Assembly: GCF_006345805.1 (NCBI RefSeq)
Contig: NC_042998.1
Span: forward strand, 190,712,001 to 190,776,000
DNA: 64,000 nt
From: Octopus sinensis
Lineage: Eukaryota
Direction: 5' to 3'
The stretch's first letter is position 1. Each line of letters opens with the position of its first letter. Below the pieces are notes generated by a model. That model was not told the origin of the DNA and made no database searches. It saw only the letters and a program-made list of their open reading frames with translations. The position numbers and the translations under genes are program-made. Below are positions 31,713 to 51,913 of this stretch, piece by piece.

Positions 31713-33140
31713 CTAAGTTTATTTACATGAACGTGATGTATGTGAATATAGATATAGAACTTTATCTGTTAAGATTACATCACGCTAGGTTTCAAGAAAA
31801 AGAAAATTCAATGTTGGTGCTCTATAAATTGTGCTTGGATATTAGTTAATATTAGTTAGCATATTATAATGATAATTTTCAGTTATAATAATTAATTCTA
31901 TAGCTAAGTATAAGTAGGATTATTGCTGCTGGGTTTATTTTTATAATAATAATTATTATTATTTTTAATTTATTTAAATTATTATTACTGGATTGTAAAA
32001 GTGAGTATTGTACCATATAGTAAGATTACAACCATATACAATCCCCATGATTCTGACGTATAGAGCCTCAGAGAATGTGGATCAGTGAAGACCTCTTGTC
32101 ATTGTTCAAATAAACAAGCACAAGGAGAAGTAAATTTAGGGCAGAATCTTATTGCTAGTCAGATGGGGCTGCTGTGATATAAAGCAGGTGAGATGCTGCA
32201 ATCACATGTATCACTAATTATAAAAAAAAAAGAAAAAAAAGCCTTGAAGCTTTGGTATATTTTATGGTGCTCAGTTAAGATGTATTCTTATTTGCTGCTA
32301 GTTTACACATTCAAGATGTGTGTGTTTGATTAAGTGAGTAAGGTGGTTATGTGACTATGTAATTATGTGAGTATGTGATTATGTGAATTTGTGTGTGAGG
32401 GAGTATATCTCTGTGTTTTGTGTGTATGTGAGCAGACTGAGCTGGAAGAATGGACGGCCTAGAAATATATTCTCTTCTAACTTTCATAGTTTCATATTGT
32501 AAAAGATTTAATTTAATCAAATATTGTTCTAATTTTTTTCATGGAAGAAAATTAATATTCTTTTTTTTTTTTTGTAGTGGATGGGGGGAAAAGACTAAAA
32601 ATAAAACAACAACAGCAACAAAACAACAACCAATTGTAACTATAATTGGCTTCTTTTTGATACATTAAAAAAACTTTTTTTTAAAAAAAATGTAGGGGAA
32701 AATAGTAAATGAATGCATTAATGTTGTATGTTATTGAAATTCGTAAAAACATACTGCCACTGCCACAAACTTAAATATTCAATTACCTAAGTCATTTATA
32801 TTTATATACACACCCTTGCTTTTTCATATAAATATACACATACATTCATGCACATACACTCACACACATATGCATATTTATATATATACATATATATGTA
32901 TGTATTTACAGTATTAGATACATGTGCATAATTATAGAACAATATATACAAATAGTTTATATACATAGATATATGTATGGCTAAATCTGAAGTAAATATA
33001 TGTGCATTATCACATATATATGTAATATAAACATACACATAACTATCTACACGTATATCTATATATGTTGAAGTTATATGTATGTATGTATGTATGTATG
33101 TATGCATGTATGTATTTATGTATTTATGTATGTATGTATG

Positions 33141-33172
<32 letters not shown>

Positions 33173-33453
33173 TATATATTTGTTAACTCATACATATGCA
33201 CACATCTATGCATACACACACATGATAAATGCATGGTATATATAAATATGCATGTATGTATAAAGGAATATATAAATATGGGTGAATGTATGTGTATGTT
33301 GTGTAGATATTTATTATTAGTAATTTTATTATAACTATTATTAATATTCTTAAATATTTTGTCAATAAAAATTTATACTTCTCATTAATAAGGTTATAAA
33401 ATATAATTCTTTATTTTGGGTGCCAGTTAGACATGCTTGCAGAAAACTACTTA

Positions 33454-33508
<55 letters not shown>

Positions 33509-33605
33509 TATATATATATGCAGAGGTATACACCACATACATATATATGCATATATTATATATGTGTGTATATATATATATTTGTGTGTGTGTGTGTGTG
33601 TGTGT

Positions 33606-33656
<51 letters not shown>

Positions 33657-34779
33657 ATATATATATGCCTGTGTGTTTTCTGTGTTTTTTTTTGTATTAA
33701 TATTTTTAACTGAAGTGAAATATATCTATGTCCATGCAATGGCTACATGTTCATATCTACTGAGATAGCGTTTAGTAACAGATGATCATTAATAATAGGA
33801 ATTTGTTATTCATTATGCATATTTGCATGCATTTCTTTATAATGTATACATATATATGTCTAATATATATGTATATACACACATACACACACGCAATATG
33901 TATATATGAATGTGTGTGCATTTGTATGAGTTTATTTGGGAGTGAGACAGTTGAAACCAAATCTTAAACTAAGACAAAGAAAAAAAAATAGTCTTAATTC
34001 AATTATGAAATTAACTTCAAAATTGCAATTAAGATATCCTTTAAGATCGCTAATAATGTTGTTGTTTGTTGTAGCAGCAGCAGCAATACTAGTAGTAGTA
34101 GTAGTAGTAGCAGTAGTAATAGTAGTAAGAATAGTTGTTGTATGTATGGTGCTGGTATGTAATAGTGGTAGTGGTAGTAATAGTGGTAGTGGTAGTAATA
34201 GTAGTAGTAGTTGTTTGCATTATTTATAATTTCCCTACATTGCCCCATTATTGATTGAGTCAGAAACATGTAAAAAACATGATCTTTCTGTTGTGACTTC
34301 TCTTCAACACTTATGTTTGGTCTTGTACTATTTGTGCAATTGGTGTCCTTATAGTGTACTATACTGACCGTCATTACAGATAGGAAGTTTCTCTTTAAGA
34401 CCTAATGTTCTATCAGTGTATGTGTGTGTTCATGTTTGCTTATGTCTCAGTCACAGTGTTAATCTGATATATTTTACTGTTCATTTAATGCCTATTAACT
34501 TCCTTTCCATTTCACTTGCCTATTAATTATTCTCTTTCTCTAGACCTTAACATTCTTGTCCTGAGTAACCAACCAAATATTTGGCAGAATTTTTACTTGA
34601 TGATATTTTTATTACAAGAATAATATTCTACGTTTATGGTTTAATCAATCCAGTGAAGCAAATCAACTCTAGATTTTTTTTCCTAATCTGTTTTGTTTAT
34701 GTATGTATAAAGAGGAGAAAAGTGTTTACGTAGCTTCAGTTGCCAGTATCTTTATGGAATGAAGACTCACCCAGCCTTA

Positions 34780-34785
34780 TTTATT
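34780..34785 (-). promoter_or_regulatory. Candidate polyadenylation signal (AATAAA) of the innexin 3' UTR
   Basis: tttatt on the plus strand, about 330 nt downstream of the stop. The motif is common in AT-rich DNA. Confidence 0.3.
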
Positions 34786-35111
34786 TGAAATGGTTTCTTA
34801 ATCCTATGACTAAAGTTAATAAACAAAAATTTAACTTTCATTCTATTAATCTGTTAGTTTAAAACACTTTGGATGTTTTTTTAAATTTATTTTGGTATAG
34901 TTTTTTTGGGCTGTCCGCAGCTAGTTGTGTTGCCTTGGCAATACCCCAGCCGAATTTCGTTTGACTCGCGACATATCTGTTGTTGTCGCTGTCCTTTGAG
35001 TGCCCTTCCTGATAAAAGGACACCGTGTTCGGCCTCCACGGGCCATAGCAGGCGTAACAAACGTGAGTGTTGTTTGAGTTGAAGAAATTTGATAAGGTGC
35101 CTGACGGCTAG

Positions 35112-36315
35112 TCAGACGTTACTGTTGTCGTCGCTAATGGGGTTGGCGTGCCGAAAAAGTGGCTTGTTCCGGTAATGGTTCCACAGTTGAAGAACAAGCT
35201 CGGATACCAGCACGTCATTGGCGTTTTTGCCTACAAGTCTCAAAACAAATATCCCATCATGCCTTAAGTATTGATCCGCGAATTTCACCGCCATTTTTTT
35301 ATCCAGTTCTGTCTTGTAACATTCGTTCACTCTCAGGAACTTTTTCAGATATCTAATACGGTGTTGGCGGAATACCATTGCATAAAACCATATCAGAAAA
35401 TTGCCGGCACTAAAGGTTGAAACAAACACTAACCAGAACCAAATGAAAATAAAAATCTTCTCATTGAATAGGTTGATGGGTAGCACACACTGTACAGTGT
35501 ATTTATGAACATTTTGCATCTGGCGAATTTCAAAGTCACACATCGTCACACGTGGGAATCTAGGAGACTCCGTCCAGTCATCTCCATTGGCTAAGTGACT
35601 CAGGACTTCAAATCCGTACAGATTATAGTTTGTGCCTAAAAATTCATTCAAAATGAAAAGCTGGCCTACAGCATTTCCCATGTAAAAAATCTTGATAACC
35701 ATGTAGATAATAAAGAGGTAATTTCCATAGCGTTTCCCCCACACAATGCAACAGTATTTCGATAGAGTCTGGCGCATTCGTATGAGGCAGCCCGATCGAT
35801 ATTCCCTGGCGTTTTCAAGCCAGCGGTCCATATATCGGACTATATGTTTGATAGTTCTCTCTCGATCTTCAGGAGCCACAAATTGGGTGTCGGCTGCTAA
35901 CGTAACAATCTTATCCAGGTTTACGCCTCCGGAAGCACCAAGGATCCTCCACAATATACAAGGAACTTTAAATAACAAGGCTTGGAAGAGAAGGATCATG
36001 GGAACCCATTGATAATATCCGATCTCCTTTTGCTGTTTTCCCTCCCGGTGCAAAGGTATTCGCTCCTCGAAAGGAACGTAGTACGTGTTTGATATCCAAC
36101 ACACGTTATTGGCATAATCCCTGTGTCCGGAAGTAAACTGTGCAGGACACCAGCAGTGAATCGGTTCCCCAACATACTGCTTGGTGCTCACAACAATTGT
36201 GAAAATAATAAATATTATTGTCGTGTAAAGGTGATTTAACCGGTCGATCCAGTCATCGTCGTAGCGCCCTTTCAAGCGAGCATAAGTTGCAAAACTTCCC
36301 AACACACTGTCCAGC
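35112..36315 (-). CDS. inx: Innexin (invertebrate gap-junction/hemichannel subunit, UNC-9-like); main coding exon
   Basis: The 397-aa ORF has the innexin hallmarks DDDWIDRLNHLYT, HCWCP...VCW (EL1 cysteines), YYQWVP, FPRVTMCDF...QCVLPINLFNEKIF (EL2) and four hydrophobic TM segments. It ends in TGA at 35114-35112. The ORF-track start is only a GTG. A polypyrimidine tract plus CAG acceptor (AG at 36317-36316) opens the exon at 36315 in phase 2: G|CTG GAC AGT GTG = (x)LDSVLGSF. Confidence 0.96.
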
Positions 36316-36415: not shown

Positions 36416-36700
36416 AAACAATTGCAGCGTGGAAGGTGTTTATAAGCCATTTAAGAAACACACAAAAGCCGTTCGATTCACTTCAACATTTAAGTTTAAT
36501 TTGTCAAAATATTTTCGTCGCTAAAATCCGCGACCTGTTCACTGACAAAGTCCGTGCTGCACGGACTTTGTCAGTGAACAGGTCGCGGATTTTAGCGACG
36601 AAAATATTTTGACAAATTAAACTTAAATGTTGAAGTGAATCGAACGGCTTTTGTGTGTTTCTTAAATGGCTTATAAACACCTTCCACGCTGCAATTGTTT
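36416..36700. repeat. Perfect 285-bp palindrome (142-bp arms, 1-nt centre at 36558), probably head-to-head termini of a Penelope-like element
   Basis: 36416-36557 is the exact reverse complement of 36559-36700 (checked by eye). The right arm continues into further repeat-like sequence to about 36760. Confidence 0.93.
36567..36616 (+). ncRNA. Minimal hammerhead-ribozyme-like motif, G3-C8 core variant (mirror copy at 36500-36549, minus strand)
   Basis: The fold is stem I TTTGTCA/TGACAAA, core GTGAACA plus one G, stem II GTCGC/GCGAC, GAAA, palindromic AATATT in place of stem III, and a UUU cleavage triplet. Confidence 0.65.
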
Positions 36701-50386: not shown

Positions 50387-51913
50387 TGTGTGTGGGTGTG
50401 TGTGTGTAGGTATGTATGTACGTGCGAATGCGCTTTTCTGTGTGTATATCTATCTATTTGTATACTAAGTTTTGCAAATATAAACGGTACAAAATGTTTA
50501 GGTAATATTTATATAGATTGCATTTGTAGAAACAAATATTATACTCAAACTATGTTAGCTTCCGGGCGATATTACAGAAAAACTCATTAATAGTTTTTAG
50601 ATCATTAGACTGTATTTTTCAATCGAAAGTTTCCAGAATTTATAAGAAGCTAATATATTCATTCTTAGGCTATTGCCGTGTATTAAGAAGTGAATCTTTA
50701 GATACAACACATAAAAGGCTCCGGAAAGAAACACTTGGTATAGAAATACTCAACTGAATATTTGCTAAGCACTTTGTACTCTATATTTTTTATTAGAAGG
50801 TGGTAAAAAGTCAAATTACTGGAATGTTTAAGTTACAATAGAATCAGTGACTGTAGGAATTGTAAGACATGATGATTGTAGCTTCGTAAGAAGTTATGAT
50901 GGATCAATTTCATAAAATTTCTATAATTAACGAAATAGTGACTGAGTCGGTGAACATAGAGAAAACTAATAAACAAAACTTGGTTTTCAAATCGTGATTG
51001 AAAAAAAAAAATGAAACATCATTTTTGTAATTATTCTGCAAGAATCGATGCAATAAAAGAAAACATACCCCTTTTTAGCATCCCCTTCAGGTGAGGGCAA
51101 TTTTAAATTGAGTTCCTTCAATGACTTCAGTGCCGACAAATTTGGCCATTCTGTCTTTTTCTTTAGAGCATTTTGACGCCCGTTTGGTATCAAAGAATTC
51201 ATTCGGCCTTTCCATAACTATACCCCAGAAGTAAGGGTTTGACACTAGACCTTCCTTGATATATCTATCTGTTGCATAGTCAATGTCAGAACGTCAGTTG
51301 ACAGTCAGTATTTTATAGTGACATGTCTAATGCATATACAACACACAGTAAAGGTGCAGTATGTGTTGGTTGTATTCTGAATGGTCTGTTATTCCTCTTT
51401 TTGGTTATAAAATTTCTCTCTCCTCTGTTTGACATTTCATTAAACTTTCGTATTTTCCTGCCCATTTTTCTGTCCTTATTTTGTATTTAACTCAGGTACA
51501 AATGTAAATAATTTAACATTAAAAACGAGAGAGAAAAAAAGAGAAAAGGAAATAATTTGACAGTAGTGAGCTAACCATAGATATGAGCAAAGTTATCAAC
51601 GGAAATGACGCTGATTTTTCAGGTGCATAAGCTACTTGGTCGAATGAGATAACCAATCATTATTGAAATTATTAAAGATTAGTGAAATGTACTTTCAGCT
51701 TTAATTAGACTAACACAGGGCTTCAGTTAGAGACTTAGCGTCACATCATTTCATTCTCTGATCCTCAACCGCATAAATCCAATTGCTTTGCTGTCTGACA
51801 TTCTGAAACAAAGCTCATCAAGTCACTGTTTACTCATATAAATGCCCAGACAAAATGTATCATGACACACACACGCATTTAGAAATACATACATACATAC
51901 ATACATACATACA

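Follow-up and report, generated by a model that had tools for sequence, protein, structure and literature searches.

An innexin gene of molluscs appears to end in a stop codon that is not always obeyed. It is likely, with a probability of about 0.8, that its UGA, followed by CUAG, is a site of conserved, programmed stop-codon readthrough; that the resulting protein is translated we infer from evolution. A leaky stop is followed by 74 codons that evolve like coding sequence right across the molluscs, chitons and octopuses included, and because of this a longer innexin isoform is very probably made. The initial annotation of the locus, drawn up from sequence alone, had proposed just such a minor, C-terminally extended innexin, and the proposal is supported: of the refuting tests named in that annotation, all those that were feasible here went in its favor.

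The DNA in question, referred to below as the window, is the whole 64-kb stretch of the Octopus sinensis genome that was analyzed, and positions are those of the window. Its pertinent features are these:

51068..51202, minus strand: one alternative first coding exon (MNSLIPNGRQNALKKK...GDAKKG) belonging to the innexin gene, located by tblastn
35115..36315, minus strand: unc-9-like innexin, large terminal coding exon, with its acceptor AG at 36317-36316
35115..35123, minus strand: S-N-V codons AGT AAC GTC, the canonical C-terminus, of class I PDZ-ligand pattern
35108..35114, minus strand: putatively leaky stop and its context, UGA-CUAG, the stop TGA being at 35114-35112
35099..35117, minus strand: 7-bp hairpin GUCUGAC-UAGCC-GUCAGGC enclosing the UGA, found in the minimum-free-energy fold (z=-2.3)
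34890..35111, minus strand: putative readthrough extension of 74 codons (LAVRHLIKFLQLKQHSRLLRLLWPVE...SCGQPKKTIPK), the frame remaining open to TAA
35034..35111, minus strand: best-conserved portion of the extension, codons 1-26, of which residues 2-15 are predicted to be helical
34908..34922, minus strand: distal conserved motif S-C-G-Q-P, immediately ahead of the second stop
34887..34889, minus strand: second in-frame stop, TAA, overlapped by an AATAAA hexamer (34891-34886) and coinciding with a collapse in GC content

The reading frame upstream of the stop is that of an innexin, matching Pfam PF00876 over profile positions 1-333 of 333 (E=4.3e-105). The protein encoded by the terminal exon is 100% identical to the innexin unc-9 isoform cluster of Octopus bimaculoides, O. 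sinensis, O. vulgaris and Argonauta, and orthologues across Mollusca are 76-84% identical. The alternative first exon encodes 45 aa that are 100% identical, by tblastn, to the N-terminus of the O. vulgaris/O. sinensis isoform P0125, a match that marks the window as Octopus. Around the stop the minus strand reads ...AGT AAC GTC TGA CTA GCC GTC..., and the coordinates, sequence and 74-residue in-frame peptide given in the initial annotation held exactly. So did its statement that GC content is coding-like here and collapses near the second stop: it is 0.47-0.53 across 34900-35150, and 0.19-0.26 below 34900.

Orthologous DNA was assembled from 10 further mollusc lineages, making 11 in all: a second cephalopod, two gastropods, six bivalves or bivalve-like lineages (one an unplaced mollusc, L003) and a chiton, the last assigned by 99.8% identity. 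The set contains no vetigastropod sequence. The N-terminus of the cephalopod contigs L005–L007 matches exon 51068..51202 at 76% identity, and since it maps to that exon these contigs are spliced mRNAs; each of the three has TGA at the stop. The conservation of the stop context at the level of nucleotides is plain. TGA followed by C at +4 is present in 11/11 lineages, CTA in 9/11 and the complete CTAG in 5/11. In all nine lineages that have leucine at the first position after the stop the codon is CTA, which accounts for only 9% of the Leu codons in these genes; other Leu codons within the extension, unlike this one, vary freely. The chiton and L003 have UGA-CAC and UGA-CAA instead of CUA, and their extensions resemble those of the remaining lineages only loosely. 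The context is UGA-CUAG in the window and UGA-C in the sample as a whole, and the feature is pan-molluscan, not specific to cephalopods.

One rival explanation is that the UGA terminates translation in the normal way and that only an ordinary 3'UTR lies beyond it, with a frame open by chance and any conservation due to RNA elements such as sites for miRNAs or RNA-binding proteins. The window alone gives this view some comfort. Dinucleotide shuffles produce an open frame of at least 74 codons with P=0.025-0.06, and frame +2 in Octopus stays open for 62 codons, too; the length of the Octopus frame, by itself, is weak evidence for translation (P about 0.03-0.06). Among the orthologues the picture is different. 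In frames +1 and +2 a stop mostly appears after no more than 0-26 codons, whereas the readthrough frame is open in 11/11 lineages, for 37-113 codons, and Fisher's combined probability for the open frame across nine lineages is 4e-8. Frameshifts or early stops in this segment would have refuted the proposal; none occurs in the 11 lineages.

What decides against a chance open frame is the pattern of substitution by codon position. In the innexin coding sequence proper, Octopus and cephalopod L005 differ at 181 nucleotides and not at a single amino acid, so synonymous sites between them are saturated. In the first 44 codons of the extension there are 35 nucleotide differences, distributed 8/2/25 over the three codon positions; 18 of the changed codons are silent and 9 alter the amino acid (P<=5e-5 under random placement), whereas the silent/replacement counts in the shifted frames are 4/26 and 0/29. 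Omega for the extension is 0.12 overall, and it falls to 0.03 over codons 1-26, where 13 nucleotide changes (2/0/11 by position) yield one amino-acid change. All of the indels between the two extensions are multiples of three, including an insertion of 31 codons, and downstream of that insertion L005 still encodes S-C-G-Q-P, with silent substitutions in its codons (TGC/TGT, CCC/CCA). Three venerid-like bivalves display the same third-position bias and enrichment of silent changes, with P<=1e-4 in every pair, and the remaining five frames fail the test; the bias belongs to the readthrough frame only. Frame-preserving indels and synonymous-biased substitutions were the two marks of coding sequence to be sought in orthologues according to the initial annotation, and both are there. 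Protein-coding constraint on the extension is, then, something we regard as shown.

The constraint is not uniform. Past codon ~26 evolution of the extension is rapid, with pN of 0.31 in cephalopods and omega of 0.29-0.41 in gastropods. In the close gastropod pair L008/L009, extension and 3'UTR diverge at about equal rates (7/279 and 9/406 changes, respectively), which counts in favor of an ordinary 3'UTR; comparisons of close pairs are too similar to inform, except that the extension is without indels. Set against these points are the frame open throughout, the third-position and silent-change bias confined to one frame in two independent clades, the frame-preserving indels, the placement of an [S/T]-x-V exactly before the second stop (see below), and the fact that RNA elements yield no 3-nt periodic pattern of substitution. 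We consider the ordinary-3'UTR explanation very unlikely. An antisense ORF (34906-35082, plus strand) was also considered as the source of the constraint. We rejected it because, in the other cephalopod, the antisense frames are interrupted by stops, and because they score below the sense frame.

All orthologues read have the same canonical C-terminus, ...DDNSNV, without exception. Bivalve extensions end in -ETEV (six lineages), and those of the two gastropods in -TSV and -SDV, so that in both groups an [S/T]-x-V lies exactly ahead of the second stop. The Octopus extension ends in -TIPK, without a terminal [S/T]-x-V. Both the canonical -SNV and the extension ends -TEV, -TSV and -SDV fit the sequence pattern of class I PDZ ligands, as had been pointed out for -SNV; that they bind PDZ domains is inferred. 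The accompanying suggestion, that readthrough masks the PDZ ligand, fits Octopus, but gastropods and bivalves gain an [S/T]-x-V of their own. The ancestral logic therefore resembles the moving or swapping of a PDZ ligand more than the hiding of one.

The peptide itself is unfamiliar. Near its start Octopus and the bivalves have in common the motif L-[AT]-V-[RK]-x-[LI]..L..[KQ]-Q-H, and AF2 predicts a helix, at low confidence, at residues 2-15. We do not claim that this is a membrane-binding amphipathic helix, hydrophobic moments being moderate (about 0.13-0.44 in most lineages). A word-indexed search of 5.8 G proteins found no homologues of the extension; exhaustive comparison with 1.84 G representatives by phmmer returned one weak match, in seven stretches, that is probably low-complexity; and no known domain was found in Pfam, only a sub-threshold chance match.

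No conserved stimulatory RNA structure was found 3' of the stop, where a stimulatory stem had been thought worth seeking: folding z-scores for nine lineages lie between -2.3 and +1.8, and the lineages have no hairpin in common. The 7-bp hairpin around the Octopus UGA can form in L005, where a C-to-U change leaves a G-U pair; it cannot form in gastropods or bivalves and for that reason is probably not the conserved signal.

Three other routes to a protein containing the extension deserve mention. The first is insertion of selenocysteine at the UGA, in which case the long form would be the main product and would depend on a SECIS element. In its favor, the stop is UGA in 11/11 lineages, and never UAA or UAG. 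Against it, Rfam cmscan found no SECIS in window positions 33000-35400 at E<=10, nor in eight orthologue loci at E<=1 (some of whose 3'UTRs may run past the ends of contigs); no lineage has cysteine (TGT or TGC) at the UGA position; the UGA directly follows an invariant PDZ-type C-terminus, and is not within a redox motif; and the constraint on CUA at +4 to +6 is a signature of readthrough, not of selenocysteine. This, too, is a very remote possibility.

The second is that coleoid cephalopods reach the extension through A-to-I editing, which would turn the UGA into UGG (Trp), in place of readthrough or in addition to it. Coleoids recode their mRNAs extensively by ADAR, and the Octopus UGA lies inside a small hairpin. 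The A of the UGA has a G on its 5' side, however, and G is the 5' neighbor that ADARs favor least; the stem is just 7 bp long; and the three assembled cephalopod mRNAs read TGA, with the reservation that this is assembled sequence and not read-level evidence. The UGA and a conserved extension are found, moreover, in bivalves, gastropods and a chiton, groups that are not known to recode extensively. Editing cannot be the ancestral route because the same UGA and extension occur where extensive recoding is not known, and we think it most improbable that it accounts for what we see.

The third is that the extension is reached by an alternative splice past the stop, or by independent, non-AUG initiation on a downstream ORF. 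Either would likewise give rise to coding constraint downstream of the stop. But the spliced mRNA contigs L005–L007 are colinear through the UGA and the extension, and the RefSeq Octopus isoforms, of which there are at least 12, vary only at the N-terminus and all end DDNSNV at the UGA. What precedes the stop is purine-rich, conserved coding sequence rather than the polypyrimidine tract of an acceptor; conservation begins at the first codon after the UGA, in the frame of the coding sequence, in 11/11 lineages; and the Octopus extension contains no AUG. Neither variant of this explanation is at all likely.

Readthrough remains the preferred reading, and the decoding it calls for is inferred, as are its efficiency and the actual translation of the extension. 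Most ribosomes would terminate at the UGA and release the canonical innexin subunit with a free C-terminal -S-N-V. UGA followed by CUA(G) would make a poor terminator, however, and a fraction of ribosomes would decode it with a near-cognate tRNA; in other eukaryotes, near-cognate decoding of UGA inserts Trp, Arg or Cys. These ribosomes would continue for 74 codons to the UAA and produce an extended subunit with three parts: a conserved basic-hydrophobic segment straight after the stop, probably helical; a fast-evolving linker, probably disordered; and a lineage-specific end. In the extended isoform of Octopus, -SNV would no longer be a free carboxy-terminus, and in those of gastropods and bivalves a new [S/T]-x-V would be presented. 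Because their C-termini differ, the two isoforms should engage scaffolds differently—a consequence that is, again, inferred—and mixed channels could contain subunits of both kinds.

There are good precedents for behavior of this sort. The UGA-CUAG motif drives 3-31% readthrough in vertebrate genes, as mutagenesis has shown (PMC4132726), and the initial annotation was right to call it a characterized animal context, its validation being in vertebrates. Among the closest parallels is AQP4 with its extended form, AQP4ex. Like innexin, AQP4 is an oligomeric membrane channel; it has a canonical S-x-V C-terminus (-SSV, with a GUA Val codon before the stop) followed by UGA-CUAG; and its extension is conserved and requires no 3' structure (PMC4132726). 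The extended AQP4 isoform controls anchoring and localization with the PDZ protein alpha-syntrophin (PMC6444679), which bears out the remark, made at the outset, that this extension alters where the channel resides. The differences are that AQP4 belongs to an unrelated protein family and a different phylum (innexin is PF00876); that innexin extensions are longer (37-113 codons), and most conserved at the start; that those of gastropods and bivalves carry their own terminal [S/T]-x-V; and that the innexin case is without experimental evidence.

OPRL1, OPRK1, MAPK10, MDH1 and VDR have the identical stop and tetranucleotide, and in them too the nucleotides of UGA and CUA have been preserved over deep phylogeny (PMC4132726), but theirs is conservation within vertebrates whereas that of innexin is within Mollusca. 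The context being conserved in Mollusca, UGA-CUAG either works across bilaterians, therefore, or was recruited independently. Readthrough is abundant in insects, Drosophila among them, and the candidates identified there by PhyloCSF (kelch and hdc, for instance) share coding constraint past a conserved stop and enrichment of UGA-C; their extensions are typically disordered, with short linear motifs (PMC4999894). These are insect genes, however, some of which rely on 3' stem-loops, and no such structure is conserved in the mollusc innexin; no innexin was found among insect readthrough cases in the searchable literature. For the role of -SNV, the functional analogy is with the neuronal connexins Cx36/Cx35 and their partner ZO-1 at vertebrate electrical synapses. 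The connexin is a gap-junction subunit whose extreme C-terminus is a PDZ ligand, without which it can neither bind its scaffold nor function properly at the synapse (PMC8081524). Innexins and connexins share no homology, however, and PDZ binding by this innexin is inferred only by analogy; no readthrough isoform of a connexin is known.

A bolder reading can be entertained, one that we rate as somewhat less likely than not. It holds that molluscs as a whole possess an ancient system of two isoforms, gap-junction subunits with different C-terminal scaffold ligands, whose ratio depends on how efficiently translation terminates; that this system originated before the split of chitons from conchiferans, roughly half a billion years ago; that the canonical subunit ends in -SNV; and that the extended subunit comprises a conserved helix and, ancestrally, a second [S/T]-x-V. 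If this is true, the composition of electrical synapses would be tuned at the ribosome, and UGA-CUA(G) would be leaky across Bilateria rather than a vertebrate peculiarity.

For cellular genes, functional readthrough that is conserved has been well documented among insects and, in vertebrates, for a handful of genes. The searchable literature yielded no report of it for an innexin or for a gene of any mollusc, and the earlier impression that it is undescribed for a mollusc innexin stands to that extent. If confirmed, the present case would be a lophotrochozoan example with very deep conservation. It would place the UGA-CUA(G) context, identified in vertebrates, far outside that group, and would bear on how the ribosome and eRF1 read 3' context. 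It would also reveal a hidden isoform of a highly conserved gap-junction subunit of neuronal type (100% identical across octopods, ~80% across Mollusca), altered in the one innexin region expected to bind scaffolds, and it would flag an annotation gap at the innexin UGA.

As for that gap, the RefSeq isoforms all end at the UGA, and some metagenome-style gene calls place Trp there by accident. In P0010 and its cluster mates the stop appears as TGG (Trp), but the DNA reads TGA; the 'W' is an artefact of a gene-caller using an alternative genetic code, and is evidence neither for editing nor for a sense codon.

The large coding exon of the innexin gene ends, on the minus strand, GAC GAC AAC AGT AAC GTC TGA CTA GCC GTC, and beyond the TGA the same frame stays open for 74 codons, to a TAA at 34889-34887. 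GC content is ~0.5 across this extension and 0.19–0.26 immediately below 34900. The initial annotation had reported the TGA-CTAG, the 74-codon peptide, the second stop and the collapse in GC, and it proved exact in every detail.

Coding features of the innexin gene in the window
36315-35115, minus strand: large innexin exon, coding; acceptor AG at 36317-36316; Pfam Innexin E=4e-105
35114-35112, minus strand: stop TGA, with CTAG directly 3'
51202-51068, minus strand: alternative first coding exon; 100% identity to the O. vulgaris/O. sinensis isoform N-terminus

On its own, the open frame in the window is weak evidence: one this long arises with P=0.025–0.06 in dinucleotide-preserving shuffles, and frame +2 is likewise open, for 62 codons. 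An AATAAA hexamer (34891-34886, minus strand) overlaps the second stop; its use as a poly(A) signal would put the mRNA 3' end just past the extended ORF. More AATAAA/ATTAAA sites lie downstream at 34785, 34645 and 34613, and the mRNA of a second cephalopod runs >200 nt past its own second stop.

The innexin encoded in the window matches, at 100% identity across 397 residues, a cluster containing the 'innexin unc-9' isoforms of Octopus bimaculoides, O. sinensis, O. vulgaris and Argonauta hians. The alternative first exon, whose identity to the O. vulgaris/O. sinensis isoform assigns the window to Octopus, lies ~14.7 kb upstream of the main one. RefSeq lists at least 12 N-terminal isoforms for the Octopus gene, which implies that numerous alternative promoters or first exons are in use, the majority located elsewhere in the window or beyond it. 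These isoforms vary at the N-terminus only; all end DDNSNV, as does every orthologue that we read, including Haliotis, Babylonia, Pomacea, Biomphalaria, Mercenaria, Saccostrea/Crassostrea-like, Solemya and Liolophura-like sequences. Between the window (35115-36305, minus strand) and L005, a spliced mRNA from the second cephalopod (443-1633), the innexin core has 181 nucleotide differences—13/0/168 by codon position—and no amino-acid change in 397 codons, and hence synonymous sites are saturated. The core is under extreme purifying selection between the two cephalopods, the only ones that we could compare, and neutral sequence at this distance should be unalignable.

The stop region was obtained from ten lineages besides the window, eleven in all.

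Stop, next four nucleotides, extension length and extension C-terminus by lineage
Window, Octopus: TGA CTAG, 74 codons, -TIPK
L005-7, second cephalopod, spliced mRNAs: TGA CTAG, 105 codons, -LIKK
L008/9, caenogastropod-like: TGA CTAG, 93 codons, -VTSV
L010/11, heterobranch (clusters with Biomphalaria/Elysia): TGA CTAG, 113 codons, -VSDV
L012/13, bivalve: TGA CTAG, 52 codons, -ETEV
L001, Crassostrea-like oyster: TGA CTAA, 48 codons, -ETEV
L002, L014 and L015, three venerid-like bivalves: TGA CTAA, 49–51 codons, -ETEV
L003, unplaced mollusc: TGA CAAG, 45 codons, -YANL
L004, chiton, 99.8% to Liolophura sinensis: TGA CACA, 37 codons, -AEMM

TGA is followed by C, and the in-frame ORF is open, in 11/11 lineages; frames +1 and +2 are mostly shut after a few codons. 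Shuffle probabilities for nine lineages, Fisher-combined, give 4e-8. The chiton and the unplaced mollusc back the open frame and UGA-C, and little beyond.

Public gene calls on oyster contigs (P0010, P0158, P0159, P0161 and P0164) include the full extension, with UGA read as Trp (L001 1962-1964). The Trp in P0010 and its cluster mates is an artefact, present because the gene caller used a UGA=Trp code and not from sequence evidence; the DNA is TGA. Such calls could be mined as a cheap, systematic screen for long in-frame post-UGA extensions. That the UGA encodes selenocysteine is very unlikely: no SECIS family matched, whether in 2.4 kb of the window (E<=10) or in eight orthologue loci (E<=1), and no lineage has Cys at this position. 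We also give little credence to A-to-I editing of UGA to UGG, which in coleoids might at best supplement readthrough. ADARs disfavour a 5' G, which the A of UGA has; assembled cephalopod mRNAs carry TGA; and the UGA and extension occur in mollusc classes without extensive recoding.

Substitutions in the extension follow the reading frame. Over codons 1–26, 13 nucleotides (2/0/11 by codon position) and one amino acid separate the window from L005; over the first 44 ungapped codons the nucleotide count is 35 (8/2/25), with 18 changed codons silent and 9 amino-acid-changing. Scored in the +1 and +2 frames, these differences yield silent/replacement counts of 4/26 and 0/29, and the three antisense frames score worse and hold stops. 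Random placement of an equal number of changes never matched the pattern in 20,000 trials (P<=5e-5). The Nei-Gojobori nonsynonymous/synonymous ratio is 0.03 for codons 1–26, rising to 0.12 when all of the alignable extension is taken; all indels preserve the frame, a 31-codon Thr-rich insertion included; and conservation extends as far as the second stop, with a distal S-C-G-Q-P motif whose codons differ synonymously. The venerid-like trio is an independent replicate: third-position differences per pair are 20/37, 16/24 and 22/40, silent changes are enriched (P<=1e-4 for each pair), and shifted frames fail again. A pattern of this kind is the standard comparative mark of translated readthrough; translation itself is inferred and not observed. 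Conservation of the extension purely as an RNA element is very improbable, as 3-nt periodic substitutions would not be expected of one. Nor is alternative splicing or separate initiation a likely source of the extension: the mRNAs are colinear through the stop, RefSeq holds no C-terminal isoform, conservation begins in frame at the first post-UGA codon in all lineages, and the Octopus extension has no AUG.

The stop context is constrained separately. The first codon 3' of the stop is Leu in nine lineages and CTA in 9/9 of these, although CTA's share of Leu codons in these innexin genes is just 9%, and so UGA, +4 C and, mostly, +5/+6 UA are constrained at the RNA level. Leu codons further into the extension swap freely. 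Vertebrate UGA-CUAG genes show the same constraint; in them, deletion of CUAG abolishes readthrough, and 12 nt 3' of the stop suffice for maximal readthrough without 3' structure (PMC4132726). Consistent with this, no stable or shared structure was found 3' of the stop in the mollusc lineages folded (z-scores -2.3 to +1.8). In Octopus the UGA lies within a 7-bp hairpin, GUCUGAC/GUCAGGC (35099-35117, minus strand). It is kept in the second cephalopod, where a C-to-U change retains a G-U pair, and is absent in other mollusc classes; conceivably it modulates termination, or serves as a substrate for editing, in cephalopods alone.

No library searched yielded a homologue of the extension peptide or a domain in it. 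Its first ~15 residues form a basic-hydrophobic motif common to Octopus (LAVRHLIKFLQLKQH) and venerid bivalves (LTVRKILGMLKAQQH), within which gastropods have a 5-residue insertion. Single-sequence AlphaFold makes residues 2–15 helix and the remainder disordered, with low confidence (mean pLDDT 53). The middle is variable and low-complexity—Thr-rich in one cephalopod, His/Asn-rich in the heterobranch—and the end is lineage-specific. All bivalve lineages (six counted, five in the list above) end -ETEV, and the two gastropods -TSV and -SDV; these share with canonical -SNV the pattern [S/T]-x-V of class I PDZ ligands, for which we have no binding data. Cephalopod extensions end basic, -KTIPK in Octopus and -KLIKK in the second species.

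Across Mollusca the innexin gene has a stop context of the leaky type that is held at the RNA level, with a protein-constrained in-frame extension behind it. Unless we misread the evolutionary evidence, from which translation is inferred and not observed, programmed readthrough of the innexin UGA yields an extended subunit (probability ~0.8). In a minority of termination events, near-cognate decoding of UGA would produce this subunit; efficiency and the inserted residue are untested. Class I PDZ ligands require a free C-terminal carboxylate, and the extended subunit therefore cannot present -SNV. The gastropod and bivalve forms may present a different ligand, 50–110 residues further out, and the Octopus form none. 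With -SNV lost, the two isoforms, and mixed channels, would be predicted to engage scaffolds differently. In vertebrate AQP4, the closest parallel, the canonical end is -SSV, a Val codon precedes the UGA-CUAG stop, and the readthrough isoform is necessary for syntrophin-linked anchoring; vertebrate Cx36-ZO-1 is a gap-junction precedent for PDZ dependence. The mechanism is already known. The innexin instance is probably undescribed, and full-text literature searches found nothing relevant for innexin with readthrough, or for stop-codon readthrough with the word mollusc or with names of molluscs such as Octopus. This instance is conserved to an unusual depth and connects translation termination to electrical-synapse scaffolding in a way that can be tested.

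Downstream of the gene, 33000-34400 is dense in TA/CA/GT microsatellites and (GTT)n/(AAT)n-like low complexity; the many Rfam matches there to mir-297, mir-3149 and mir-1277, on both strands and all far under gathering scores, are artefacts of these repeats. In the intron ~100 nt upstream of the large exon's acceptor lies a perfect palindrome (36416-36700), its 142-nt arms 100% complementary around a 1-nt spacer and encoding identical 58-aa ORFs on either strand; its origin may lie in a foldback or MITE-like element or, alternatively, in an artefact of long-read assembly.
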